Shown piece by piece: positions 2,776 through 36,651 of a stretch of DNA of 36,651 nt. This DNA comes from Octopus bimaculoides (taxonomy: Eukaryota). Position 1 is the first letter of the stretch, and every line of letters starts with the position of its first letter. Where the stretch lies: assembly GCF_001194135.2 (NCBI RefSeq), contig NC_068987.1, positions 96,088,126 through 96,124,776 of the forward strand. Reading direction: 5' to 3'. Under the pieces are notes generated by a model. It ran no database searches. It was given only the letters and a program-made list of their open reading frames with translations, and was not told the origin of the DNA. Both the position numbers and the translations under genes were made by a program.

Positions 2776-5412
2776 ACTGAACTGGACGCTGATGGCCTAT
2801 CTAACCCATGCCAGCATGGAAATGAGCATAAAATGGTATATAATCTATATCTGTTACTGTAACTTGTCCAGGTCTCAGAACTGTATAGATTAGCCAATAC
2901 ATCACAAGTTGTACTTCCAGTAAAACTAGTTACAAATTTACAGTGGTGGGGCTGAAAAGTTTCTGGCTTCGGGTAAAAGAAAATACAAGAGAATCAGTTA
3001 ATTATGATTTTATTCAACATATTCCCCTCACAAATTCACACACTTATTGCAGTGATCCTTCAGTTTTTCTAAGCCCTGTAATGAGTTGGACCTGGTTGGA
3101 GGTCCAACTCATTAAGGTTGGACCTCTAACCAGGTTTTTCGCAATACCCTTAAAGCCAGAAACTTTTCAGCACCTCTTTGTATATCTTTACATACATTAT
3201 ATTTGTTATTATTATATATGTTCCATACTCAACTGAGCACTCAATCCACTCTGTAGAGTAGTTTGCATTAGGAAGAGTATCCAGCCATAAAAGCCATGCC
3301 AAAACAGACAGTGGAACCTGGTGCAGTCTTCTGGCTTGCCAGCTCCTATCAAACCATCCAGCCCATACCAGTATGGAAAATGGAGACTAAATGATGATGA
3401 TGCTCCATCTTACAAGACTACTGACCTCATTCCGTTACTTGTCTCATACAAAAATAAATTACTTCTTATGCTTATAAATTTCCCATTATTCGTGTTAACC
3501 ATCTGTAATTGTATAATGACTTTTTCAAAGCTATTTCAGACTAATATAGATTTGGTGATAAAATCACTACTAGTATATCTTTCATGTATTAGATTTTTAT
3601 TGAATGGAAAGTAAAGTGAACTGGCTCAAATGATTCTCTCACAGCCATTTAACTTAAACAGAGTAGGATATAAAATCTTTCTCAACAAATGCCTTACATT
3701 TTGTTTCAAGGAGGAAAACCTGATTTGTTTTCTAAGCACCAAAATTTGGAGGGTGGAGACTTGTTATCACCAACGTTTTAAGATAACATGCCCCTACCCT
3801 CCCACCTACTAAAGGATGTTGATCCAGTAGGTGAGGCTCTGTGAAATTCTTTTATTCATGTTAGAAAAAGTAGCCACAACTAACTCAAACCACACTCTAT
3901 TTTCTTACAAAAGGACTTATTGGATAATAATAAAAAAGAAATCTAAGTCCTGTGGTTGGATTTTGAGTCCAGTCCCACAAAATCCTTGAGTAAGTGTTTT
4001 TTGACTATAGCCCTGGGCTGACCAAGGTTTTGTAAGTAAATTTGTTTAATAAAAAGTACGTGGAAACCAGTCGTGTGTGTGTCTGTCTCTTTGCTTTGTA
4101 CTATTTGGCAACTAGTGTTGGTTTGTTTATGTTCCTGTAACTTAGCAGCTTAACAAAGTGACAATAGAATAATTACCTGACTTCAAAGATAAAGTTCTGG
4201 CATTTTATTTTACTTACCTTGGAATATTGAAAGACAAAAGACCTGAGTGAGATTTGAAATCGGCACTCAAAGAGACNNNNNNNNNNCTGTCTCTTTGCTT
4301 TGTACTATTTGGCAACTAGTGTTGGTTTGTTTATGTTCCTGTAACTTAGCAGCTTAACAAAGTGACAATAGAATAATTACCTGACTTCAAAGATAAAGTT
4401 CTGGCATTTTATTTTACTTACCTTGGAATATTGAAAGACAAAAGACCTGAGTGAGATTTGAAATCGGCACTCAAAGAGACAAAACTGGTACTGCTAGTTA
4501 TTTCATTTGACACTCTACCGATTATGCCACTCCCTAAGAAAAGAAGTCACAGAAATGTTCTATAAGAAAACAGGGGATTTGTGTTTTGTTTTGCTTTGTA
4601 TGTGTTTGTGTGTTCAAAATGTAAAAGTTATTTCCTGAATGTCCTAGCTTATTTACATTTCAAAAAGTATAGTTTGCTGCGTTCTTTTTTGGTGACAAAG
4701 AAATTTTGACTTTGTGTTCTTCATTGAGTGAGTATTTGATTAGTAAACCAAGAAAAGTCTGTTCAGAAGGATTTTATTGTTGGGGTTTTTATTTTCTTCC
4801 CCCCTCTCCCCTCTTTTTCGACTGTTTGCTTTTTGCACGTGGACACTACACGTGGCCATCATGATAACTCATCATCAGCAATATCACCATCATCATCATA
4901 AATTAGTTAATATTTTGTTTGTAATATAGTGGAAGAAACACTAATGAGTGGATTTGGTAGACGGAAACTGAAAGAAGCCCATCATATTTATGTATATATA
5001 TATGTATGTGTCTATATGTTTGTGTGTCTGTATTTGCCCCCCCCCCCTCCAACATCGCTTGACAACCGATGCTGATGTGTTTACGTCCCCGTTACTTAGC
5101 GGTTCGGCAAAAGAGATCGATACAATAAGTACTAGGCTTCCAAAGAATAAGTCCTGGGGTCGATTTGCTCGACTAAAGGCGGTGCTCCAGCATGGCCACA
5201 GTCAAATGACTGAAACAAGTAAAAGAGTAAAGAGTAGAACAACAGGTTAAATGCTTCGCAGTTTTTATTTACATTACATACCTTTGTGTTCTGAAATCAA
5301 TCAAATCCTGCCAAGTTCTGTTTCACCTTTCATCTATTTGGAGAAAGAATTACATAACTGTATCCTCCTCCAAAAGTTTTGGATGTGTTCACCATCATCA
5401 TCATCATATATA

Positions 5413-5795
5413 TAAGTAAGATCGTTGCCAGTGCCCCTGGACTGGTTCTTGTGCGGGTGGCACATGAGATGCACCATTTTGAGCGTGGCCGTTGCCAGTA
5501 CCGCCTGACTGGCTCCTGTAGGATTTTCGAGCGAGATCGTTGCCAGTGCCCCTGGACTGGCTTGTGCGGGTGGCACATAAAAGACACCATTTCGAGCGTG
5601 GCCGTTTTCGTGCGGGTGACACGTAAAAGCACCCACTACACTCTCTGAGTGGTTGGCGTTAGGAAGGGCATCCAGCTGTAGAAACTCTGCCAAATTAGAT
5701 TGGAGCCTGGTGTTGCCATCCGGTTTCACCAGTCCTCAGTCAAATCGTCCAACCCATGCTAGCATGGAAAGCGGACGTTAAACGATGATGATGAT
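5413..5795 (+). mobile_element. Young RTE LINE 3' UTR (5'-truncated at the ORF stop)
   Basis: Near-identical to 27268-27647 (-), where it directly follows an RTE ORF end; ends ...CGGACGTTAAAC(GAT)n. Confidence 0.85.
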
Positions 5796-7167: not shown

Positions 7168-7728
7168 CGGATCTTTTTTAAAACGGGGGCCACATTTTTC
7201 ATTAATGTTTTACGTAGTGTTTTTGGTACGGAAAGACTTTCAAACTTCGTATACTTATCTATTTTGTGTTATAGAACAGAAAAATATTTTTGTATTCGAA
7301 TTTATTTCATGTAAAAAATTGTGTTATTTCGATAATTTCAACCAATCACTGACGTCCATTCAGCCGATATACATTAAGTGCCGACTACATAAACAAACGA
7401 TTCTTCGTTTTATTTGCTTTTTTCATTTTAAATTTGCTTTAACCCTAATCCTAACCCTAACCCTAACCTTAGGGTTAGGGTTAGGGTTAATTGTTTCAGA
7501 ATCGTTTGTTTATGTAGTCGGCACTTAATGTATATCGGCTGAATGGACGTCAGTGATTGGTTGAAATTACAGAAATACGACAACTTTAACATGGAATAAT
7601 TTATGGATTTCTTTTTTTTTAAGAAGACTAAGAGAAAAAGATGTTTTATATGACACATTCTACCAGTGTTCCAAGTTTCAAAGTGTTTCGTTAATGAAAA
7701 ATGTGGCCCCCGTTTTAAAAAAGATCCG
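7168..7728. mobile_element. 561-bp fold-back MITE with telomeric (CCCTAA)/(TTAGGG) core
   Basis: Perfect 38-bp TIRs (7168-7205 / 7691-7728); 6-bp TSD AAATAT (7162-7167 / 7729-7734); perfect 72-bp inner inverted arms (7333-7404 / 7498-7569). Confidence 0.92.
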
Positions 7729-8186: not shown

Positions 8187-8525
8187 TTGTTTTTTATATG
8201 GAACACAGAACGGAGAATAGGAATCTTGCTAGAACTGACAGTACCATGGGAAGAAAACATCGACAATGCAGAGAAACGAAAGGAGAAGAGATACGATAAA
8301 CTAATCGAAGAGTGCAGAGAACAGGGATGGACTGTCGAGTACTACCATCTGGCAGTGGGGGCTAGAGGCTTCATTGAAAGAAAAATGACAACGCTATTCA
8401 AGAGAAGATTTGCATTTTCAAGCTCGGAACTGTGAAAACTGATAAGGAGGATACAATAGGCGGTCGAAAAAGCCAGCTTCTATATATGGCTGAAGCGGGA
8501 AGACCAAATATGGCTTGAAAGTCAT
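8187..8525 (+). mobile_element. 5'-truncated RLE non-LTR retrotransposon (HERO/NeSL-like), endonuclease C-terminus
   Basis: IW...ILLELTVPWEENIDNAEKRKEKRYDKLIEECREQGW...VGARGF...AVEKASFYIWLKRE matches the PD-(D/E)xK restriction-like endonuclease tail; two in-frame stops. Confidence 0.85.
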
Positions 8526-10558: not shown

Positions 10559-11459
10559 CAAGGTGGTATCCTATAGTTCCCAGACTAGTTCTGTAGAGTG
10601 CCAACAGATGGCAGTACATGCTTGCATACACAGTGAGCACCAGCGTTGACCGTCATGAGGTAGTGTGCCAAGTGATATCACTGTGTTTACTTCACAAGTT
10701 GTGGAATTTGTGTTTATCTGATCATGTGCATGCTGTAGTCTGCAATTTTGTTATAGTCAGGAACAAAGAGCCAGTGTGAAATTTTGCATTAAACTTGGGA
10801 AGTCTGCTACAGGGACATTGATCATGCTTCAGCAAGCTTACAGTGACAAGGCAATGGGTTGTACACAATGTTTCAAGTGGTATGGACACTTCAGAAGCTG
10901 AAAAACATCCCTAGAAGATGAGCGATCAGGAAGACTTGTCACAAGCATCACCCTTGGAAATGTGGTATTGTGCCTCGAGAATTTGTCCTCCTAGGGCCAG
11001 ACTGTCAACTAAGAAAGAGTTCTCCTGTGATGTTTTGAAACATTTGAGGGAGGGCATTCAGTGAAAGTGACTGGATCTGTAGAGTGCAAAGAATCGGATT
11101 TTTTACTGAGCTCTCCTCACCTGTGAGCTTCTTGCCATAAACAACATGGTATCACTTCTACACTCACTCAATTCCCCAGATCTAGCACCTGTAGACTTCC
11201 ATCTCTTCCTCAAGATGAAAATGCAGCTCAAAGGTTACCATCGTAATACCATTGTCGAGATCCAGAGCGAATTGCAGAAGGTCCTTGACTCGCTTACAGA
11301 AAATTACTTTCAGGCTGGATTTCGAAAGTGGCAGGAATGCTGGGACCAGTATATTGCTGCACAAGGTGACTATTTCAAAGGAGATGATTTTGAAACTTAG
11401 GTAAATAAGTTATTTTTTATTAAACATAAGTAGTCTGGGAACCTTTTGATAACACCTTG
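10559..11459 (+). mobile_element. Internally deleted mariner element (901 bp, pseudogenised transposase)
   Basis: TA TSDs (10557-58, 11460-61); imperfect ~30-bp TIRs CAAGGTG...TTCCCAGACTA; EQRASVKFCIKLGKSAT (HTH), RSGR, GIVxxEF..GQTVN and NSPDLAPVDFHLF (YSPDLAPxD) motifs with stops and frameshifts. Confidence 0.9.
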
Positions 11460-12739: not shown

Positions 12740-13432
12740 AGCATTTTGTTAAACTCCCTTCACCTGATTACTGATATTCCACTAGTTCTTCATTAATAGT
12801 ACAAAATCCTGTGGTGTACTCATATAAACTGTTCACTGACATTATATATATATATGTCACTCTACTTAATCATTGACATTGTAATCATTTGCTGAACCCT
12901 TTTAGGGTAGATATATATTAGTGACAGAAGCAGTGTTAATACTGAGCTGAACTATCTATCTCCACTTAAACATGGATGTTCCTTTAGAACAAACTATACT
13001 GAAGTAGTTACCATGAGAGAAACCCCCATATTGGTTTTTGGTGCAGAATGCATGCATGTTTATATCTCTAATGAGGAGATAAATCTCTGCCATCTCCAGC
13101 ACTGAGACCACCAAATCACATGATTTCGACCTTCCCAGGTCTCATCAGTGATGGACACTCGACTGCTAGAGATAGCAGTGACTCATTTCCCCGCACCACC
13201 AATGATATATAGAAAAACAGTGCCAGAACAGTCACTGGTGTCACGATTAGCCAGTGAACTTGTTAAGAAATATATATTAGTGACATGTGCAGTATTAATA
13301 CTGAGTGGTAATATTTATCCCCACTTAAATGTGGTTGTTCTGTTAGAACAAACTATACAGTGGTAGATACCATAAGAGAACCTCTCATATTGGCTTTTGG
13401 TGCAAAAAGTACACTTGCTTATATCGCTATAC
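12740..13432 (-). mobile_element. Diverged ~350-360 bp tandem repeat with hammerhead motifs (candidate non-LTR retrozyme)
   Basis: 12911-13068 aligns with 13270-13430 (offset 359, roughly 75% by eye); hammerhead core at 13142-13148 has a decayed counterpart at 12790-12796 (offset 352). Confidence 0.65.
13087..13178 (-). ncRNA. Type I hammerhead ribozyme
   Basis: Minus strand: CCAUCA-CUGAUGA-GACC(UGGGAA)GGUC-GAAA-UCAUGUGA-U-U/UGGUGG. Stem I 6 bp, stem II 4 bp, invariant core intact; stem I is extended by a 3-bp and a 15-bp helix (13164-13178 with 13087-13101). Confidence 0.88.
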
Positions 13433-13719
13433 TGTATTTTAGGTGGCATTATGTTGTATCTTTTATCATTTATCTTTCACTTGTTTGAAACATTTGACTG
13501 CGACCATGCTCGGGCACCATCTTCAAGAGTTTTAGTCAAACAAATTTACCCCAGGACTTATTTTTTCAAGCCTAGTACTTACTATCAGTTCATTTTGCTG
13601 AACTGCTAGCAATATAAGCAAGTGTGCATTTTGCACTAAAATCCAATACAAGGGTTTTTTTCATGGTATCTACCACAGTATAATTAAACTAATCCGCCTG
13701 TATTTTCTCTTACCCAAAG

Positions 13720-14149: not shown

Positions 14150-14575
14150 GCAATAATGGCGATGGTGTGGTGGTGTTACATGTGATTATGATGCTTGTAA
14201 TTGTAGCCGGTGATGTAGTTAGGGTGTGAAAGTGGTGGTGGTGGTGGTGGTGATGGTGGTGGTAGTGGTGGTGATGGTGGTATTGGTGGTGGTGGTGGTG
14301 GTGGTGGTGGTGGTGGTGGTACTGGTGGTGGTGGCAGTGGTGGTGCTGGTGCTGGTGGTATTGGTGGTGGTGCTGGTGGCGGTGGTGGTGCTGGTGGTAC
14401 TGGTGGTGGTGGCAGTGGTGGTAATAGTAGTGGTGGTGGATTTGAATGTATCTGGTCATTGTGGTGATGATACTAGTGGTACATGTGATCAAAATGATTG
14501 TAAATATAGGAGGTAGTGGTGGTGGGGTTACAGTTGTTATGATAGCCATGGTGATAGTGGTGAAGCTTGTGGTTG
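14150..14575. repeat. (GGT)n-rich degenerate microsatellite
   Basis: Long GGT/GCT/GAT array; source of the poly-V and poly-H ORFs. Confidence 0.9.
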
Positions 14576-14902: not shown

Positions 14903-14939
14903 ATAGTAGTAGTAGTAGTAGTGATAGTAATAGTTGTAA

Positions 14940-14989
<50 letters not shown>

Positions 14990-15475: not shown

Positions 15476-15709
15476 CCTATTTCGTTATTGCCCACAAGGG
15501 GCTAAACATAGAGGGAACAAACAAGAACAGACGAACGGATTAAGTCGATTACATCGACCCCAGTGCGTAACTGGTACTTAATTTATCGACCCCGAAAGGA
15601 TGAAAGGCAAAGTCGACCTCGGCGGAATTTGAACTCAGAACGTAACGGCAGACGAAATACCGCTAAGCATTTTGCCCGGCGTGCTAACGATTCTGCCAGC
15701 TCGCCGCCT
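15476..15709 (-). mobile_element. tRNA-derived SINE, family A, young copy
   Basis: Reverse complement of the 221-452 family with CpGs retained (GAGTTCAAATTCCGCCGAGGTCGAC). Confidence 0.88.
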
Positions 15710-15734: not shown

Positions 15735-16139
15735 TGTTGAGGCAGCAAGTTAGCTGAATCGTTACTGTGCCAGGCTGAATAATTAATGGCATTCTTTCTG
15801 ACTTTGTGTTCTGAGTTTGAATGCTGCCTAGGTTGACTTTGCCCTTCATCCTTTCTGAGTCAATAAAATAAGTACCAGTTGAGTACTGGGGTCAACAGAA
15901 TCAACTTACCTCTCCCCCGAAATTGCTGACCTTGTGCCAAAATTTGTAACCATTATCAAGGCAGTGAATTGGCAGAACCTTTAGCATGCCAGGGAAAATG
16001 CTTAGCAGCATTTCATCCATCTTTACATTCTGAGTTCAAATTCTGCCAAGACCAACTCTGCCTTACATCCTTTCAGGGTTGGTGTAATCAACTAGTCCCC
16101 TCCCCCAAAATTTCAGGCCTTGTGCCTTTAGTAGAAAGG

Positions 16140-16174
<35 letters not shown>

Positions 16175-16390
16175 GGTGACGAGCTGGCAGAATTGTTAAC
16201 ACACTAGATGAAATGCTTTGCAGTATTTAACCTGTCACTACATTCTGAGTTCAAATTCTGCCAAGATCAACTCTGCCTTTCATCCTTTCAGGATCGATAA
16301 ATTAAGTACGAAAGGAACTCTGGGGTCGATGTAATCAACTAGTCCCCCTCCTTCAAAATTTCAGACCTTGTGCCTTTAGTAGAAAGGATT
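15735..16390 (+). mobile_element. Head-to-tail stack of three family A-related SINEs
   Basis: Three repeats of head/GAGTT(C/T)AAAT/CATCCTTTC core and GTGCC tail at ~15735, ~15958, ~16172, with an (ATT)n linker. Confidence 0.75.
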
Positions 16391-16444
16391 ATTTTTATTG
16401 TTATTGTACATTTCTCATCTGAGGGCTCTTTATTTCACTTGCTC

Positions 16445-16750: not shown

Positions 16751-16937
16751 TAAGGTGGCGAGCTGGCAGAATCATTAACATACTGGACAAAATGCTTTGC
16801 GGTATTTCACCCATCGCTATGTTCTGGGTTCAAATTCCGCCGAAGTCAACTTTACCTTTTATCCTTTCAGGGTCAATAAATTAAGTATCAGTGAAACACT
16901 CAGGTCAATGTAATCAACTAGTCCCTGCCCCATAAAT

Positions 16938-17034
16938 ATTAACAATCAGAAATTAGTTGGAGAAATTAGGATTGACGTGAGTATAGAATATGCTCTGAAA
17001 ACTGCTTTATCAAGGACAGCGGGGATTTTGAGAC
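16938..17034 (+). repeat. Inverted copy of part of the R4-like fragment
   Basis: 97-bp reverse complement of 16513-16609, about 90% identical by eye. Confidence 0.85.
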
Positions 17035-18799: not shown

Positions 18800-19230
18800 T
18801 GTAGAGGAAACATGTGGAAGTTGATAGACCTAGGAAGACGTGGGACAAAGTGGTGAGAAAAGATCTTTGGATGTTGCACCTCACTGAGGAAATGACAAGG
18901 GTCCAGGAGTTGTGGTGATTTGCAGTATTTGAGAAGACGCATCAAGCTAAGTAAATTCACTGATATCCATACAGGCTTTTCCTTTACAGGTGCCGGTGCC
19001 ACATAAGAGGCACTCGTGTCGGTGCTACATGAATGCACTCATGCTAGTGGCATGTAAAAAACACTCAGCACACTCTGCAAAGTGGTTGGTGTTGGGAAGG
19101 GCATCCAGCCATAGAAACCATACCACAACAGACAATTCGAGTCTGGACTGCTCCCCAGCTGGCCCGCTCCTGTCAAACCATCCAACCCGTGCTAGCATGC
19201 AAAACAGACGTTAAATGATGATGATGGTGA
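18800..19230 (+). mobile_element. RTE LINE 3' end (ORF end plus UTR), older copy
   Basis: RPRKTWDKVVRKDLWMLHLTEEMTRVQELW*FAVFEKTHQAK* followed by the RTE tail and (GAT)n. Confidence 0.8.
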
Positions 19231-19712: not shown

Positions 19713-20188
19713 ACGATGATGATGATGATGTATATAGTTGTGTGTTTGTGTCTGTGTTTGTCCCCCCACCATCACTTGACAACCAATGTTGATGTGTTTA
19801 CATCCCCGTAACTTAGTGGTTCGGCATAAGAGATTGATAGAATAAGTACCAGGCTTACAAAAAATAAGTCCAGTGGTCAATTTCTTCGACTAAAAGGCAG
19901 TGCTCCAGCATGACCACAGTCAAAATGATTGAAACAAGTAAAAGAATATATATATGTTAGTGTGTGTGTAATGTACCTTTGCCAAGTCATCACATGATGG
20001 TTGTGAATAAGCAAAATCATACAAGCAAGGTTATTGATTTTCTATTTCCTGTGGAAAATGTGTCTAGCCATGGAGAGATATCAGATAAAGTTGGCAACAG
20101 GAAGGGCATCTGGTCATAGAAAATCTGTGTCAACAAATTCTATGTGACTCATGCAAGCATGGAAAAGTAGGCATTAAATGATAATGAA

Positions 20189-21101: not shown

Positions 21102-22389
21102 TTAAGAATATCTTCCCCTTTCCCTCCCTCCACTAGTCTTAGAGGCTCTGCAAAATGTCATGGACTATAAGATAAAAAATAGTAAGGTATTGTACTAATG
21201 TTACGCATGCATGATTATTTAATTAAACAGATTTACATATTGGTCTCAAATTTTGGTACAAGACCAGCAATGTCTGTGTTTGTCCCCCCAACATCACTTG
21301 ACAATCGATGCTGGTGTGTTTATGTCCCCGTAACTTAGTGGTTCGGCAAAAGAAACCGATAGAATAAGTACTAGGCTTCTAAAGAATAAGTCCTGGGGTT
21401 GATTTGCTCAACTAAAGGTGGTGCTCCAGCATGGCCACAGTCAAAAGACTGAAACAAGTAAAAGAGTAAAAAGTAACCCCGAAAGGATGAAAGGGAAAAT
21501 AGACTACATCGAAATTTGAACTTAGAATGTAAAGATGGATGAAATGCCACTAAGCATTTTATCTGGTATGCTAACAATTCTGCCAGCTTGCTACCCTAAA
21601 TATAAAAAGAGTTATATATTAAAAGTGCATTATGTGTACACATAATTCACTTCTGGTTGACCCAGTACGACCTACTTTATCTATCAGTATGGCAAGCATT
21701 TGACTTAACTCCTATGAGGATTTTGAATCCCTTTTATATTTTCTAATTATAATTTCTAATCACTCAAACTTAAGCTAGATTCATATGTTCTGACAATGAC
21801 TTTCATACACTTTGAATTGCACAATGATAACAACTGCTGTGTGTATATATGTAGGTGGGGAGCTGTGTGTTTAGAAAGAAATAATTAGGTTAATTACAGG
21901 TTAATGTACTTCAGTGGTTCTCAACCATTTCTATCACAACAACACGCTCTTTTCGTCCAATGTTGTTTTACAGACACCTTCATGTGTTTTGATTTGGAAA
22001 ATAAATTATCTTAATCAAACAGAGACTAATTTTGTGCAGTGGTTTATTATCTATATTCCCTTATACTTTTCCATCCAGCATGCTCTGCTTTTTAAATATT
22101 TGCTTAGACCAGTGACAATGTTAAATTTTCATAGAAATTGCTAAAGAAGTTAAGGTCTTAGAAAACAAAATTATAAAAGTACCCGGTACATGCTGTAAAG
22201 TGGTTAGCATTAGGAAGGATATCCCACCATACAAACCATACCAAAGCAGACATTGCAGTCCTTAGACTCATCAGATCTTGTCAAAACTGACCAATCCATG
22301 CCAGCATGGAACATAGATGTTAAAAGATAATGATACTGGACCTTGGTGCATCATCAAACATGTTTCTACAACAAGGATTAATTTATTGA

Positions 22390-23760: not shown

Positions 23761-23920
23761 TAGCATGCATGCTAACATCACTTCATCTGAAACAGACATG
23801 GACAACCGTTTTCGAGAAGTGGGCTACACGGGTCATCATCAGATGGGCTGCACTACTAAAGAAAATCCATTCATTTGTTGTGCCATTCAGAAAATCCCAC
23901 AGGCTGCAGTTTGCCAATGA
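23761..23920 (+). CDS. Candidate terminal coding exon, unknown protein (SMHANITSSETDMDNRFREVGYTGHHQMGCTTKENPFICCAIQKIPQAAVCQ*)
   Basis: Non-repetitive and CpG-retaining; pyrimidine tract with tandem acceptors TTTTATAAG/GCAG (23756, 23760); open frame to TGA 23918-23920. A second plus frame and one minus frame are also open, so the frame is not proven. Confidence 0.45.
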
Positions 23921-27035: not shown

Positions 27036-27267
27036 CACCTAGGTTTCCTAAATGGTCATACTTTCATCTATGTACTTACTAGGCTCACTGTAACTTAACC
27101 CTTTTACTGTAAAAATGAGGTATGTCCACTCGAAATTTTATTATTCTTAACTGTACTTGTGAGTTGGTTTGGTAGATAGAAACTGAAAGAAGCCTGTCGT
27201 GTATGTGTTTTTATGTACCCTTGTCTAGATATTACATGATAGTTGTAAATGAGCATCATTCATCATC

Positions 27268-27792
27268 ATCATCATCGTTTAACGTCCGCTTTCCATGCTA
27301 GCATGGGTTGGACGATTTGACTGAGGACTGGTGAAACCGGATGGCAACACCAGGCTCCAATCTAATTTGGCAGAGTTTCTACAGCTGGATGCCCTTCCTA
27401 ACGCCAACCACTCAGAGAGTGTAGTGGGTGCTTTTACGTGTCACCCGCACGAAAACGGCCACGCTCGAAATAGTGTCTTTTATGTGCCACCCGCACAAGC
27501 CAGTCCAGGGGCACTGGCAACGATCTCACTCGAAAATCCTACGGGAGCCAGTCAGGCGGTACTGGCAACGGCCACGCTCAAAATGGTGCATCTCATGTGC
27601 CACCCGCACAAGAGCCAGTTCAGGGGCACTGGCAACGATCTTACTTGGCTTGCCGGGTCTTCTCACGCACAGCACATTTCCAAAGGTCTCGGTCAGTAGT
27701 CATCGCCTCGGTGAGGCCCAATGTACGAAGGTCTTGCCTCACCACCTCAGCCCAGGTCTTCCTGGGCCTACCTCTTCCACGGGTTGTCATGG
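27268..27792 (-). mobile_element. Young RTE LINE 3' end with intact ORF terminus
   Basis: TTRGRGRPRKTWAEVVRQDLRTLGLTEAMTTDRDLWKCAVREKTRQAK* (stop 27641-27643), then ~370-bp UTR and (GAT)n. Confidence 0.9.
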
Positions 27793-28261: not shown

Positions 28262-28500
28262 CAGTACGGCAGTGAGCTGGCAGAAATGTTAGCATGCTGG
28301 GTGAAATGCTTAGCGGTATTTTGTCTGCCGTTACATTCTGAGTTCAAATTCCGCCGAGGTCGACTTTGCCTTTCATCCTTTCAGGGTCGATTAAATAAGT
28401 ACCAGTTATGCACTGGGGTCAATGTAATCGACTTAATCCGTTTGTCTGTCCTTGTTTGTCCCCTCTATGTTTAGCCCCTTGTGAGCAATAAAGAAATAAG
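28262..28500 (+). mobile_element. tRNA-derived SINE, family A, young copy
   Basis: Full head-to-AATAAAGAAATA copy; preceded by an aborted head at 28230-28262. Confidence 0.88.
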
Positions 28501-29900
28501 AATCATTAGCACACTGGGCAAAATGCTTAGTAGTATTCCATCCATCTTCATGTACTTTTAGTTGAAAGGACCATTATTACTGCTATTATTAGTAAGCAGA
28601 TGACTATGCCATCTGCTTACTAAAAATTATCCAGCCGACATTCATAAAAATGGTACTGATCCTACCTGTCACTTTTGAGGTACAATCAGAGAAACAACTG
28701 ACCATTTCATCTCTGGATGCTCTATGTTAGCTTCAACTGTGTATACTTATGCCATGATAGACTTGGTTGGTATTTATGCTAGATCATATGCCATCAGTTT
28801 GCACTACGAGAAGAATTGGTGGGAACCAAAGTTTGCCATAGTAGTAGAAAATAAAGACATAACTATACTTTGGAGATGGCACAGAAGCGTAAATATGATA
28901 TCAAGGCCAACCGGAGTGTGGTATGGAAGAATGTGCTGGCAGGAATGGTTGAAATGAAGGATTTGTGAATGTTTGTTGGAAAAAAATATAATTAAAAAGT
29001 TCTGATGCTCTGTGAGAACTAGAATGTAAGGAGTGGTGTGCAAAATGAAGGCAGACTGTGTAATAGTCAGTGATGAGTGTTGAGAAGTGGTGAAGAGGGT
29101 CGCAGATAAATATGGAACAGTAATAGGTACTATATTTATGAAAACGAAAAATATGATCATATATATATATATATATGTATGCATACACTCACCCTTCCAC
29201 ACATACACATGCACACACACACACACACACATACACATTTACATATAGTTTGATTATATACACACATATACATTCAAAATACATACATGCACGTACACAC
29301 AAACAAATACATATCTGCATATACACATATACAGAAATTTCTTTCATAAGGACATCCATGTATGTGGTGGTGGGGTATACAGTTCTTAAATTATAAGCTT
29401 CACTGGGAAAAGTAAACAAATGGAAATACATTTTTATATTTCTCTGAACAGAAAAATGCTGGAATTGTTCTTGCTAATTAGTTTCATTTTATTCATCAGA
29501 AAAACAACTATTATCTTCAGTCTACAAAGAGATTGATTGCTGTTAAGCTCGTTATATCAAACACAAACCAAGTCTCAGTTGAATTCATCATCATCGTTTA
29601 ATGTCTAGCTTTCATGCTGATATGGGTAGGACAGTTTGATAGGGTCTGACAATTTGGAGGGCTGCATCATACTTCAATGTCTATTTTGGCATAGTTTCTA
29701 TGGCTGGATGCCCTTCCTCATTCCATCCATTTTTACAGAGTGTACTGGGTCCTTTTTTTCATGATACCAGCATGAGTGATAATTGTCTTCTAACATGCAA
29801 GGCTAAAGGCCTAAAGTGGCCCCTATAACAGAGAGAACAGAAGTGAAAGTAGGTGATGATTCTAAGCAAAGGGCTAAAGGAAGTTCAGTAAGGTGCATGT

Positions 29901-35500: not shown

Positions 35501-36351
35501 GGTGGTAGACATGAAGATGGGGGGAGATGTAAAGGCTGTATTTGTTTATGGTAATATGGTAGTGGATGGTGATAATGTTATTGATTAGCTTCAATTAGCT
35601 CAAGGTGATCAAAAGTATTCAAGCTATGATGACCCCTCGCTCTTGTTTTTTTTTTTTTGCTTTCCTCCACCCCTGTACCCCAAACTGCATTACCGTATGT
35701 GTCTGTCTTTAAGAGGGTAGTGTGTGGTTGCTATTTCTAGCAGGGTGAGCGACCATGTAGAAGTTCCCTTGTTCACATGAGGTTAATGCTGTAGTAGATA
35801 GTGGTGTCAGTGGTAGTTGGAGTGTTAATAGTGTTGAAAGTGTTGTTGATGTTTTGTTCCAACACAGTCCTGATCAGGGAAGCCTATGGTCAAAAACATT
35901 CCAGCTATGTCTATCCCACCTGATTTTCAGGCATAGTATGTCTTGGAATACATTATTAAATGCATAACCCTTCAAGACTGACTGTTAGGTATGTATTGAG
36001 TAATATTTGGCTGCTGTTTCAAACAGATCAAGTGATCTTTCAGAGGCACCCTCAGTGATGTTACTTTTGTTATTGTTATTGTTGTTGGTGCAGTAGCCTT
36101 GTTCTGGTTCACTTCAGTTAAGCAGATCTTTGATAAAAGTTGCTCTAGCCATAACTATCTCTCATTTCTCCGCCACAGCTNNNNNNNNNNCAGACATACT
36201 GTATTTAAAATTACATTATCCGATGTATCCCTATCAAAGGGAGTTGAATGTGACTCGGGAGAAATTTGGGTACTATTTATAGCATATCTGTCAATCTTGC
36301 AGAGTCAATTTCATTGTTGTTTTTGGTGGAAGTTGAGATGATATTAATCAT

Positions 36352-36651
36352 CATCATCGTTTAACGTCCGCTTTCCATGCTAGCATGGGTTGGACGATTT
36401 GACTGAGGACTGGTGAAACCGGATGGCAACACCAGGCTCCAGTCCGATTTGGCAGAGTTTCTACAGCTGGATGCCCTTCCTAACGCCAACCACTCAGAGA
36501 GTGTAGTGGGTGCTTTTACGTGTCACCCGCACGAAAACGGCCACGCTCGAAATGGTGTCTTTTATGTGCCACCCGCACAAGCCAGTCCAGGGGCACTGGC
36601 AACGATCTCGCTCGAAAATCCTACAGGAGCCAGTCAGGCGGTACTGGCAAC
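36352..36651 (-). mobile_element. Young RTE 3' UTR, runs off the window end
   Basis: Near-identical to 27268-27570 and to the reverse complement of 5495-5795. Confidence 0.88.

Follow-up and report, generated by a model that had tools for sequence, protein, structure and literature searches.

A type I hammerhead ribozyme within a partially tandem 359-bp repeat of Octopus bimaculoides, a likely relic of a non-LTR retrozyme

Is the hammerhead-like sequence on the minus strand of a non-coding stretch of the Octopus bimaculoides genome a genuine ribozyme, what kind of element carries it, and how active is this copy expected to be? We addressed these questions in a window of 36,651 nt, which is the whole stretch of DNA analysed here (contig NC_068987.1, positions 96,088,126 to 96,124,776) and to which all coordinates below refer. 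A first-pass annotation had described a complete type I hammerhead ribozyme (HHR) on the minus strand of apparently intronic or intergenic DNA, and each element that it listed is indeed present at the coordinates claimed. Read on the minus strand from 13178 to 13087, the sequence begins with CUGCUAUCUCUAGCA GUC GAG UGU CCAUCA CUGAUGA GACC UGGGAA GGUC, continues with GAAA UCAUGUGAU U and, beyond the predicted scissile bond, ends with UGGUGG U CUC AG UGCUGGAGAUGGCAG. Its parts are the following:

13108–13154, minus strand: minimal type I HHR, found by reading the sequence, by a structural descriptor, by alignment to the HH9 model and by covariance model R1
13178–13164 / 13101–13087, minus strand: 15-bp helix of CUGCUAUCUCUAGCA and UGCUGGAGAUGGCAG, with two U·G wobbles
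13160–13158 / 13106–13104, minus strand: second helix, GAG/CUC
13157–13155 opposite 13107, minus strand: internal loop of helix I, UGU versus U
13154–13149 / 13113–13108, minus strand: helix I, 6 bp, CCAUCA/UGGUGG
13148–13142, minus strand: core CUGAUGA
13141–13128, minus strand: helix II, GACC/GGUC, with loop UGGGAA
13127–13124, minus strand: core GAAA
13124–13115, minus strand: helix III, AUC/GAU, with loop AUGU
13114, minus strand: U17, with the predicted scissile bond between 13114 and 13113

Canonical HHR cores are defined by CUGANGA, GAAAY and RUH (PMC7229834, legend of Supplementary Fig S1). The octopus sequence carries these elements in the canonical order, as CUGAUGA, GAAAU (13127–13123) and AUU (13116–13114). 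The topology is that of type I, with an open-ended helix I and capped helices II and III. Helix II, which can alternatively be read as 5 bp with a GGGA tetraloop, is closed by G10.1–C11.1, and the 3–4 bp of helix III are closed by A15.1–U16.1.

The chance expectation for such a core was estimated with our own type I descriptor (helix I, CUGANGA, helix II, GAAA, helix III, U, H, helix I). A descriptor search was one of the checks proposed with the first-pass annotation; it found the site at 13108–13154 on the minus strand as the only match in the 36.6-kb window, both strands included. In 400 dinucleotide-preserving shuffles, the descriptor matched 0.0175 times per window in its loose form and 0.0025 times in its strict form. 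At this rate, a multi-gigabase genome would hold about 100 or more chance cores, and the descriptor alone is therefore no proof of a ribozyme.

The second proposed check, an Rfam cmsearch, failed at the curated thresholds: across the whole window, no Rfam family reached its gathering threshold. The best model of the hammerhead clan, Hammerhead_HH9 (RF02275), scored 20.6 bits against a gathering threshold of 52 when given only the 63-nt core, in an alignment that reproduces every helix of the type I architecture. In the E-value mode of Rfam, run on 501 nt, the sole hammerhead match was Hammerhead_3, at 16.6 bits against a threshold of 48.5 (E = 1.1). We also built a covariance model, R1, from four experimentally validated retrozyme HHRs, namely coral Amil224, mussel Mg353 and axolotl Ax353 and Ax330 (PMC7229834, Supplementary Table 2), with the query excluded from training. 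Run over the whole window with filters off, R1 aligned to 13154–13108 of the minus strand from end to end at 36.0 bits (rough E = 2e-8). The runner-up, at 18878–18916 on the plus strand, reached 14.6 bits and has no GAAA. Thus, the octopus sequence matches validated animal retrozyme HHRs well, though it stays below the curated Rfam thresholds.

Several other readings suggested by these searches were rejected. The type III reading behind the Hammerhead_3 match, with GAGUC|A at 13186–13180, requires a bulged G16.2 and leaves 14 nt of its "helix I" unpaired. A miRNA precursor reading rests on MIR2599, which scored 24.6 bits against a gathering threshold of 120 and amounts to a generic hairpin match. 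A candidate second HHR at 23810–23842 on the minus strand contains CTGANGA and CGAAA and failed the descriptor. The R1 runner-up at 18878–18916 consists of ACCUCACUGAGGA followed by UGUGGU, which is identical to the 5' half of axolotl Ax330, and lacks helix II as well as GAAA; it looks like a chance match that seems to lie within the 3' end of a LINE-type ORF.

The pairing extends well beyond the minimal ribozyme, as helix I is prolonged into a rod that bears the ribozyme at its tip:

13069–13198, minus strand: rod of about 130 nt, identified by folding and by its G·U count

Outwards from helix I, the rod comprises the UGU/U internal loop, the GAG/CUC helix, the 15-bp helix and about 16 more pairs that lead to 13198/13069. 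Read as minus-strand RNA, the rod is predicted to fold with −65 kcal/mol (z = −7.2); the value for the plus strand is −42.7 kcal/mol. Seven to eight G·U pairs occur in the rod and helix I together, and A·C mismatches are absent. Decay of a palindrome in DNA would be expected to produce the two in equal numbers, so that deviations consisting of G·U alone have a probability of about 2^-7; their exclusive presence indicates that pairing was kept at the RNA level, on the HHR strand. The first-pass annotation had derived the polarity of the ribozyme from its G·U wobbles, and this argument holds over the longer rod as well.

These observations bear on the view that an HHR-like arrangement arose by chance in an unrelated hairpin, whether of an inverted-repeat transposon or miRNA-like, which we regard as very improbable. 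The absence of a gathering-level Rfam match would be in keeping with such an origin, as would a minimum-energy fold that is a plain hairpin with a weak miRNA precursor match (24.6 of 120 bits) and the number of chance cores that the strict descriptor rate predicts for a large genome. Against it, all core and helix rules are satisfied together, the R1 score of 36.0 bits stands far from the 14.6 bits of the runner-up, and the geometry of helix I, internal loop and helix II is that of validated retrozyme HHRs, including a palindromic helix III. The core lies, moreover, in a low-GC tandem unit of retrozyme size (see below), and the asymmetry between G·U and A·C points to structure at the RNA level on the HHR strand. 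Taken together, the length of the flanking helix, G·U pairs specific to one strand and the R1 score make chance unlikely, and we conclude that 13108–13154 on the minus strand is a genuine, structurally complete type I HHR of the animal retrozyme type.

The first-pass annotation had further invoked docking of loop 2 onto the internal loop of helix I, as in the Schistosoma Sm-alpha ribozyme. The geometry fits this comparison: the UGU/U internal loop follows 6 bp of helix I, and a 4-bp helix II carries a 6-nt loop, so that both topology and docking geometry resemble those of Sm-alpha, newt satellite 2 (Hammerhead_1) and the amniote HH9 ribozyme (RF02275). Loop 2 itself, however, reads UGGGAA, unlike the CAAAUA/CAAAAA of Sm-alpha and HH9, and the Rfam scores of the octopus motif lie far under gathering; the proposed tertiary contact is only a geometric analogy. 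The octopus locus also differs from Sm-alpha in having no tRNA-like SINE head: ARAGORN detected no tRNA-like sequence in the window and hence no head of the Sm-alpha type.

What kind of element carries the ribozyme? Self-alignment of the window placed it in a tandem repeat of about 359 bp accompanied by an inverted partial copy, a context that the first-pass annotation did not mention:

13071–13429, minus strand: full unit of about 359 nt, composed of segment AB, a 71-nt linker and the HHR rod; GC 40%; self-BLAST period 359
13270–13429, minus strand: direct repeat copy 1 of segment AB, 80% identical to 13070–12911 over 160 nt without gaps
12911–13070, minus strand: direct repeat copy 2 of segment AB and start of a truncated second unit, from self-BLAST
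13607–13685, plus strand: partial copy of AB in inverted orientation, covering its first ~79 nt, 82% identical to 13351–13429 reversed
13469–13608, minus strand: unrelated SINE-like repeat between the inverted and direct copies, outside the ribozyme element

The tandem thus extends over about 1.45 units, with a start-to-start distance of 359 and a single HHR. The inverted copy lies head-to-head with copy 1, and the alignment shows that direct and inverted copies begin at one shared point. The intervening SINE-like repeat is 73–77% identical to copies at 1356–1467, 5097–5231, 19819–19945 and 21341–21470. Remnants of the HHR segment were sought after copy 2 and before copy 1, and none rose above the shuffled background. 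No ORF of more than 72 aa overlaps 12900–13450, and the window holds no long ORFs; a six-frame Pfam search of ~12.1–14.2 kb returned no family, including no reverse transcriptase (RT) or GIY-YIG domain. The search for a target-site duplication gave no convincing one, the sole candidate being a 7-mer at chance level.

This layout resembles that of a known class of elements. Animal type I HHRs are mostly found in non-LTR retrozymes (PMC7229834), whose metazoan representatives consist of tandem units of 150–450 bp, from dimers to multimers (about 350–390 bp in mussel), and are non-coding, low in GC (<45–50%) and expressed as highly self-paired linear and circular RNAs (PMC7229834). The octopus unit is likewise non-coding, low in GC and highly self-paired as RNA, with a GC content of 40%, no ORF above 72 aa, no Pfam domain and a rod with z = −7.2. 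Its period of 359 bp lies within the retrozyme range, yet the tandem comprises only about 1.45 units and one HHR, and an alternative reading of the layout is a unique segment flanked by two direct repeats of 160 bp.

The closest known systems are the metazoan non-LTR retrozymes (Cervera & de la Peña, 2020; PMC7229834), especially the ~350–390-bp family of Mytilus galloprovincialis, with which the octopus unit agrees in length, GC content, lack of coding capacity and highly self-paired RNA. At the level of the ribozyme, the octopus and retrozyme HHRs share a helix I of 6 bp before the internal loop, a helix II of 4 bp capped by 5–6 nt and a short palindromic helix III. The proximal part of helix I, UCA/UGG with its U·G wobble, is common to the octopus, mussel and axolotl HHRs, and, as in the mussel HHRs, the archetypal contact nucleotides of loops 1 and 2 are absent (PMC7229834). 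The octopus locus departs from Mytilus and other retrozymes in its ~1.45 units and single HHR, from which no circRNA could be produced; its ribozyme has U at position 17 instead of C or A, and its helix I runs into an unusually long rod of ~40 bp.

A current view holds that retrozymes owe either their mobility or their origin to Penelope-like elements (PLEs), whose pLTRs have been proposed as their source. PLE insertions typically form partial tandems, next to which a 5'-truncated copy in inverted orientation is often found (PMC8557442). A cephalopod genome paper reported 235 Hammerhead_1 loci in giant squid, and PLEs occur in cephalopod genomes; with hundreds of cephalopod Hammerhead_1 matches published, HHRs are to be expected in the octopus lineage. 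By analogy, the 359-bp unit fits a non-LTR retrozyme that would have been inserted by a PLE. In our view, the locus is likely to be what remains of a "non-LTR retrozyme" of the animal type, a non-autonomous retroelement that carries a ribozyme, in the octopus lineage. The absence of an Rfam gathering score, an energy minimum other than the hammerhead fold and the atypical loop 2 count against this assignment, as do the lack of any other retrieved family member and of a convincing target-site duplication.

Following published retrozyme and PLE biology, tandem units of the parent family would be transcribed, and each HHR would cut after position 17 to give unit-length RNAs with a 5'-OH and a 2',3'-cyclic phosphate. 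A tRNA ligase would circularise the released RNAs, and the RT of a PLE would copy the circles back into the genome, which may yield partial-tandem and inverted insertions. The solitary HHR described here could cut a minus-strand read-through transcript once, at 13114|13113; because the locus holds a single HHR, no circle would be released.

The insertion architecture is equally relevant to another origin, in which the locus would be a fragment or solo pseudo-LTR of an autonomous PLE whose coding part was lost or lies outside the preserved segment. A partial tandem with an inverted partial copy is the classic architecture of PLE insertions, and the octopus locus shares with the HHRs of PLE pLTRs (Cervera & de la Peña, 2014; Craig et al, 2021, PMC8557442) this arrangement as well as the type I fold and a probable dependence on dimers. 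PLEs carry HHRs in their pLTRs and are present in cephalopod genomes, and retrozymes themselves may derive from pLTRs. Even so, we find this origin unlikely. No frame of ~12.1–14.2 kb gives an RT or GIY-YIG signal, in a window without long ORFs, so that the RT/GIY-YIG ORF of a PLE is missing nearby. Furthermore, PLE HHRs are usually minimal, without helix III and loop contacts (PMC6155905), whereas the octopus ribozyme is canonical in layout, has all three helices, among them a stable helix I and a helix III of 3–4 bp, and obtains its 36 bits from a model trained on retrozyme HHRs alone.

Assignment to a retrozyme relic leaves the age and the preservation of the copy to be considered. Among the 160 aligned sites of the direct repeat copies, 32 are substituted (18 transitions, 14 transversions; Jukes–Cantor distance 0.116 per lineage), and this 20% divergence of the flanking copies indicates that the insertion is old. 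In a simulation of neutral decay from identical copies, in which a structure counted as intact when it was free of broken pairs and core changes, the 92-nt structure remained intact in 0.2% of cases and the 47-nt core in 3.6%. The picture of a neutral relic may therefore be incomplete, given that the 92-nt structure is intact despite the divergence of its flanks. This survival could reflect ascertainment, divergence between the units that predates their insertion, or constraint acting on the rod.

The last of these would lead to an exapted HHR under purifying selection, which would serve as a self-cleaving or structured host RNA, for example in the processing of an intronic or non-coding transcript. 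In favour of such a role, every pair and the whole core of the 92-nt structure are preserved next to repeats that differ by 20%, the structure would rarely persist under neutrality (0.2%, and 3.6% for the core), all non-Watson–Crick pairs in its helices are G·U, and its best Rfam alignment is to HH9. These arguments are weakened by ascertainment bias, as the site was picked for being intact, and by the fact that the repeat copies need not have been identical at insertion. The HH9 score is far under threshold, and an optimised ribozyme would hardly be expected to have U17, so weak a helix III and an inactive fold of greater stability. We therefore hold exaptation to be quite improbable; if true, a mollusc would have domesticated the ribozyme of a retrozyme, in analogy to the amniote HH9/HH10 ribozymes.

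How active is the retrozyme-type copy itself predicted to be? Its minimum-energy fold, at −48.4 kcal/mol, is not the hammerhead, whose active fold has −39.9 kcal/mol, a gap of 8.5 kcal/mol. In the competing hairpin, UCACUGAU on the CUGAUGA side of the core pairs with AUCAUGUGA in the region of helix III. Within a monomer, helix III is worth little as a hairpin (about −0.6 kcal/mol), and the isolated 10-mer is unfolded. In contrast, AUCAUGUGAU is self-complementary between two molecules, with −14.6 kcal/mol for a self-duplex of the helix III region. The weak hairpin and the strong self-duplex suggest that efficient cleavage probably needs a double-hammerhead dimer. Palindromic helices III are also found in validated HHRs of coral (ACAGUACUGU) and axolotl (ACACGUGU) (PMC7229834). 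The newt and axolotl motifs, which have a similarly weak helix III, are documented as working in dimers.

As a cleavage-site nucleotide, U at position 17 is permitted but ranks as a poor one. The first-pass annotation had called U17 a weak variant, and we agree: the RUH rule allows it, and there is a precedent in which a change from UUC to UUU gave a poor substrate (PMC6908138). On these model-based grounds, the solitary HHR copy is expected to be at most weakly active and dependent on dimers. The further claim that the ribozyme was recently functional is open to doubt, considering the weak helix III, an inactive fold that is more stable by 8.5 kcal/mol, the poor U17 and flanking repeat copies that have diverged by 20%. 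By itself, the solitary copy is probably a relic.

Relatives of the unit were searched for within and beyond the window. The window contains no second HHR copy, exact ORF look-ups for family copies gave no match, and neither did a six-frame pseudo-protein search with the 359-nt unit. A metagenome scan with CTGATGAGACCN6GGTCGAAAT returned four unrelated hammerheads of ~50% GC and no family copy. Compared with the mussel and coral retrozymes, the unit shows no similarity outside the ribozyme core.

The locus adds a cephalopod example to the repertoire of animal retrozymes and type I HHRs, a kind that is already known, and the partial tandem with its inverted copy is in support of a connection, already proposed, between retrozymes and Penelope-type retrotransposition. 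It also illustrates that curated Rfam thresholds miss divergent but structurally complete HHR copies such as 13108–13154 on the minus strand. Expressed arrays of the unit, should octopus possess them, would supply small circRNAs in abundance to a lineage whose RNA biology is known to be unusual.

The window is rich in other repeats. A repeat of ~380 bp is present in three copies that are 98–99% identical, one of them inverted (5414–5795, 27265–27646 and 36347–36651), and this high identity marks it as a recently active element. A chance ORF of this repeat (motif FLQLDALPNANHSESV) is also found inside several unrelated Octopus bimaculoides UniRef gene models, which suggests that the repeat sequence has been incorporated into those annotations. 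Among the named matches, peptides from the high-copy repeats of the window hit only Octopus bimaculoides UniRef entries, with 41–94% identity over short stretches, which points to an octopus or a close relative as the source of the DNA. A family of ~230-bp repeats occurs in both orientations, with up to 91% identity and a cluster at ~15.3–17.0 kb; its copies lie at:

224–457: ~230-bp repeat copy
15478–15709: ~230-bp repeat copy
15741–15908: ~230-bp repeat copy
16175–16408: ~230-bp repeat copy
16754–16987: ~230-bp repeat copy
28268–28501: ~230-bp repeat copy

Two short plus-strand ORFs, at 11146–11400 and 8187–8435, resemble remnants of the C-terminus of a mariner-type transposase and of a retroelement protein, and match only a few anonymous ENA metagenome proteins, at 51–64% identity. 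At 4083–4480, a 204-bp unit with part of a SINE-like repeat forms a perfect (100%) two-copy tandem duplication, which is either very recent or an assembly artefact. The segment 11636–12107 is an N run (assembly gap) with (TA)n microsatellites on both sides; the N and TA runs account for the "perfect inverted repeats" detected in this segment, which are artefactual. Long imperfect (GTG)n and (TAG)n arrays at 14232–14439 and 14904–14989, some 1 kb away from the HHR locus, give rise to long spurious ORFs on both strands. Finally, a short interstitial telomere-like repeat, (TAACCC) × 4.8, is located at 7440–7468.
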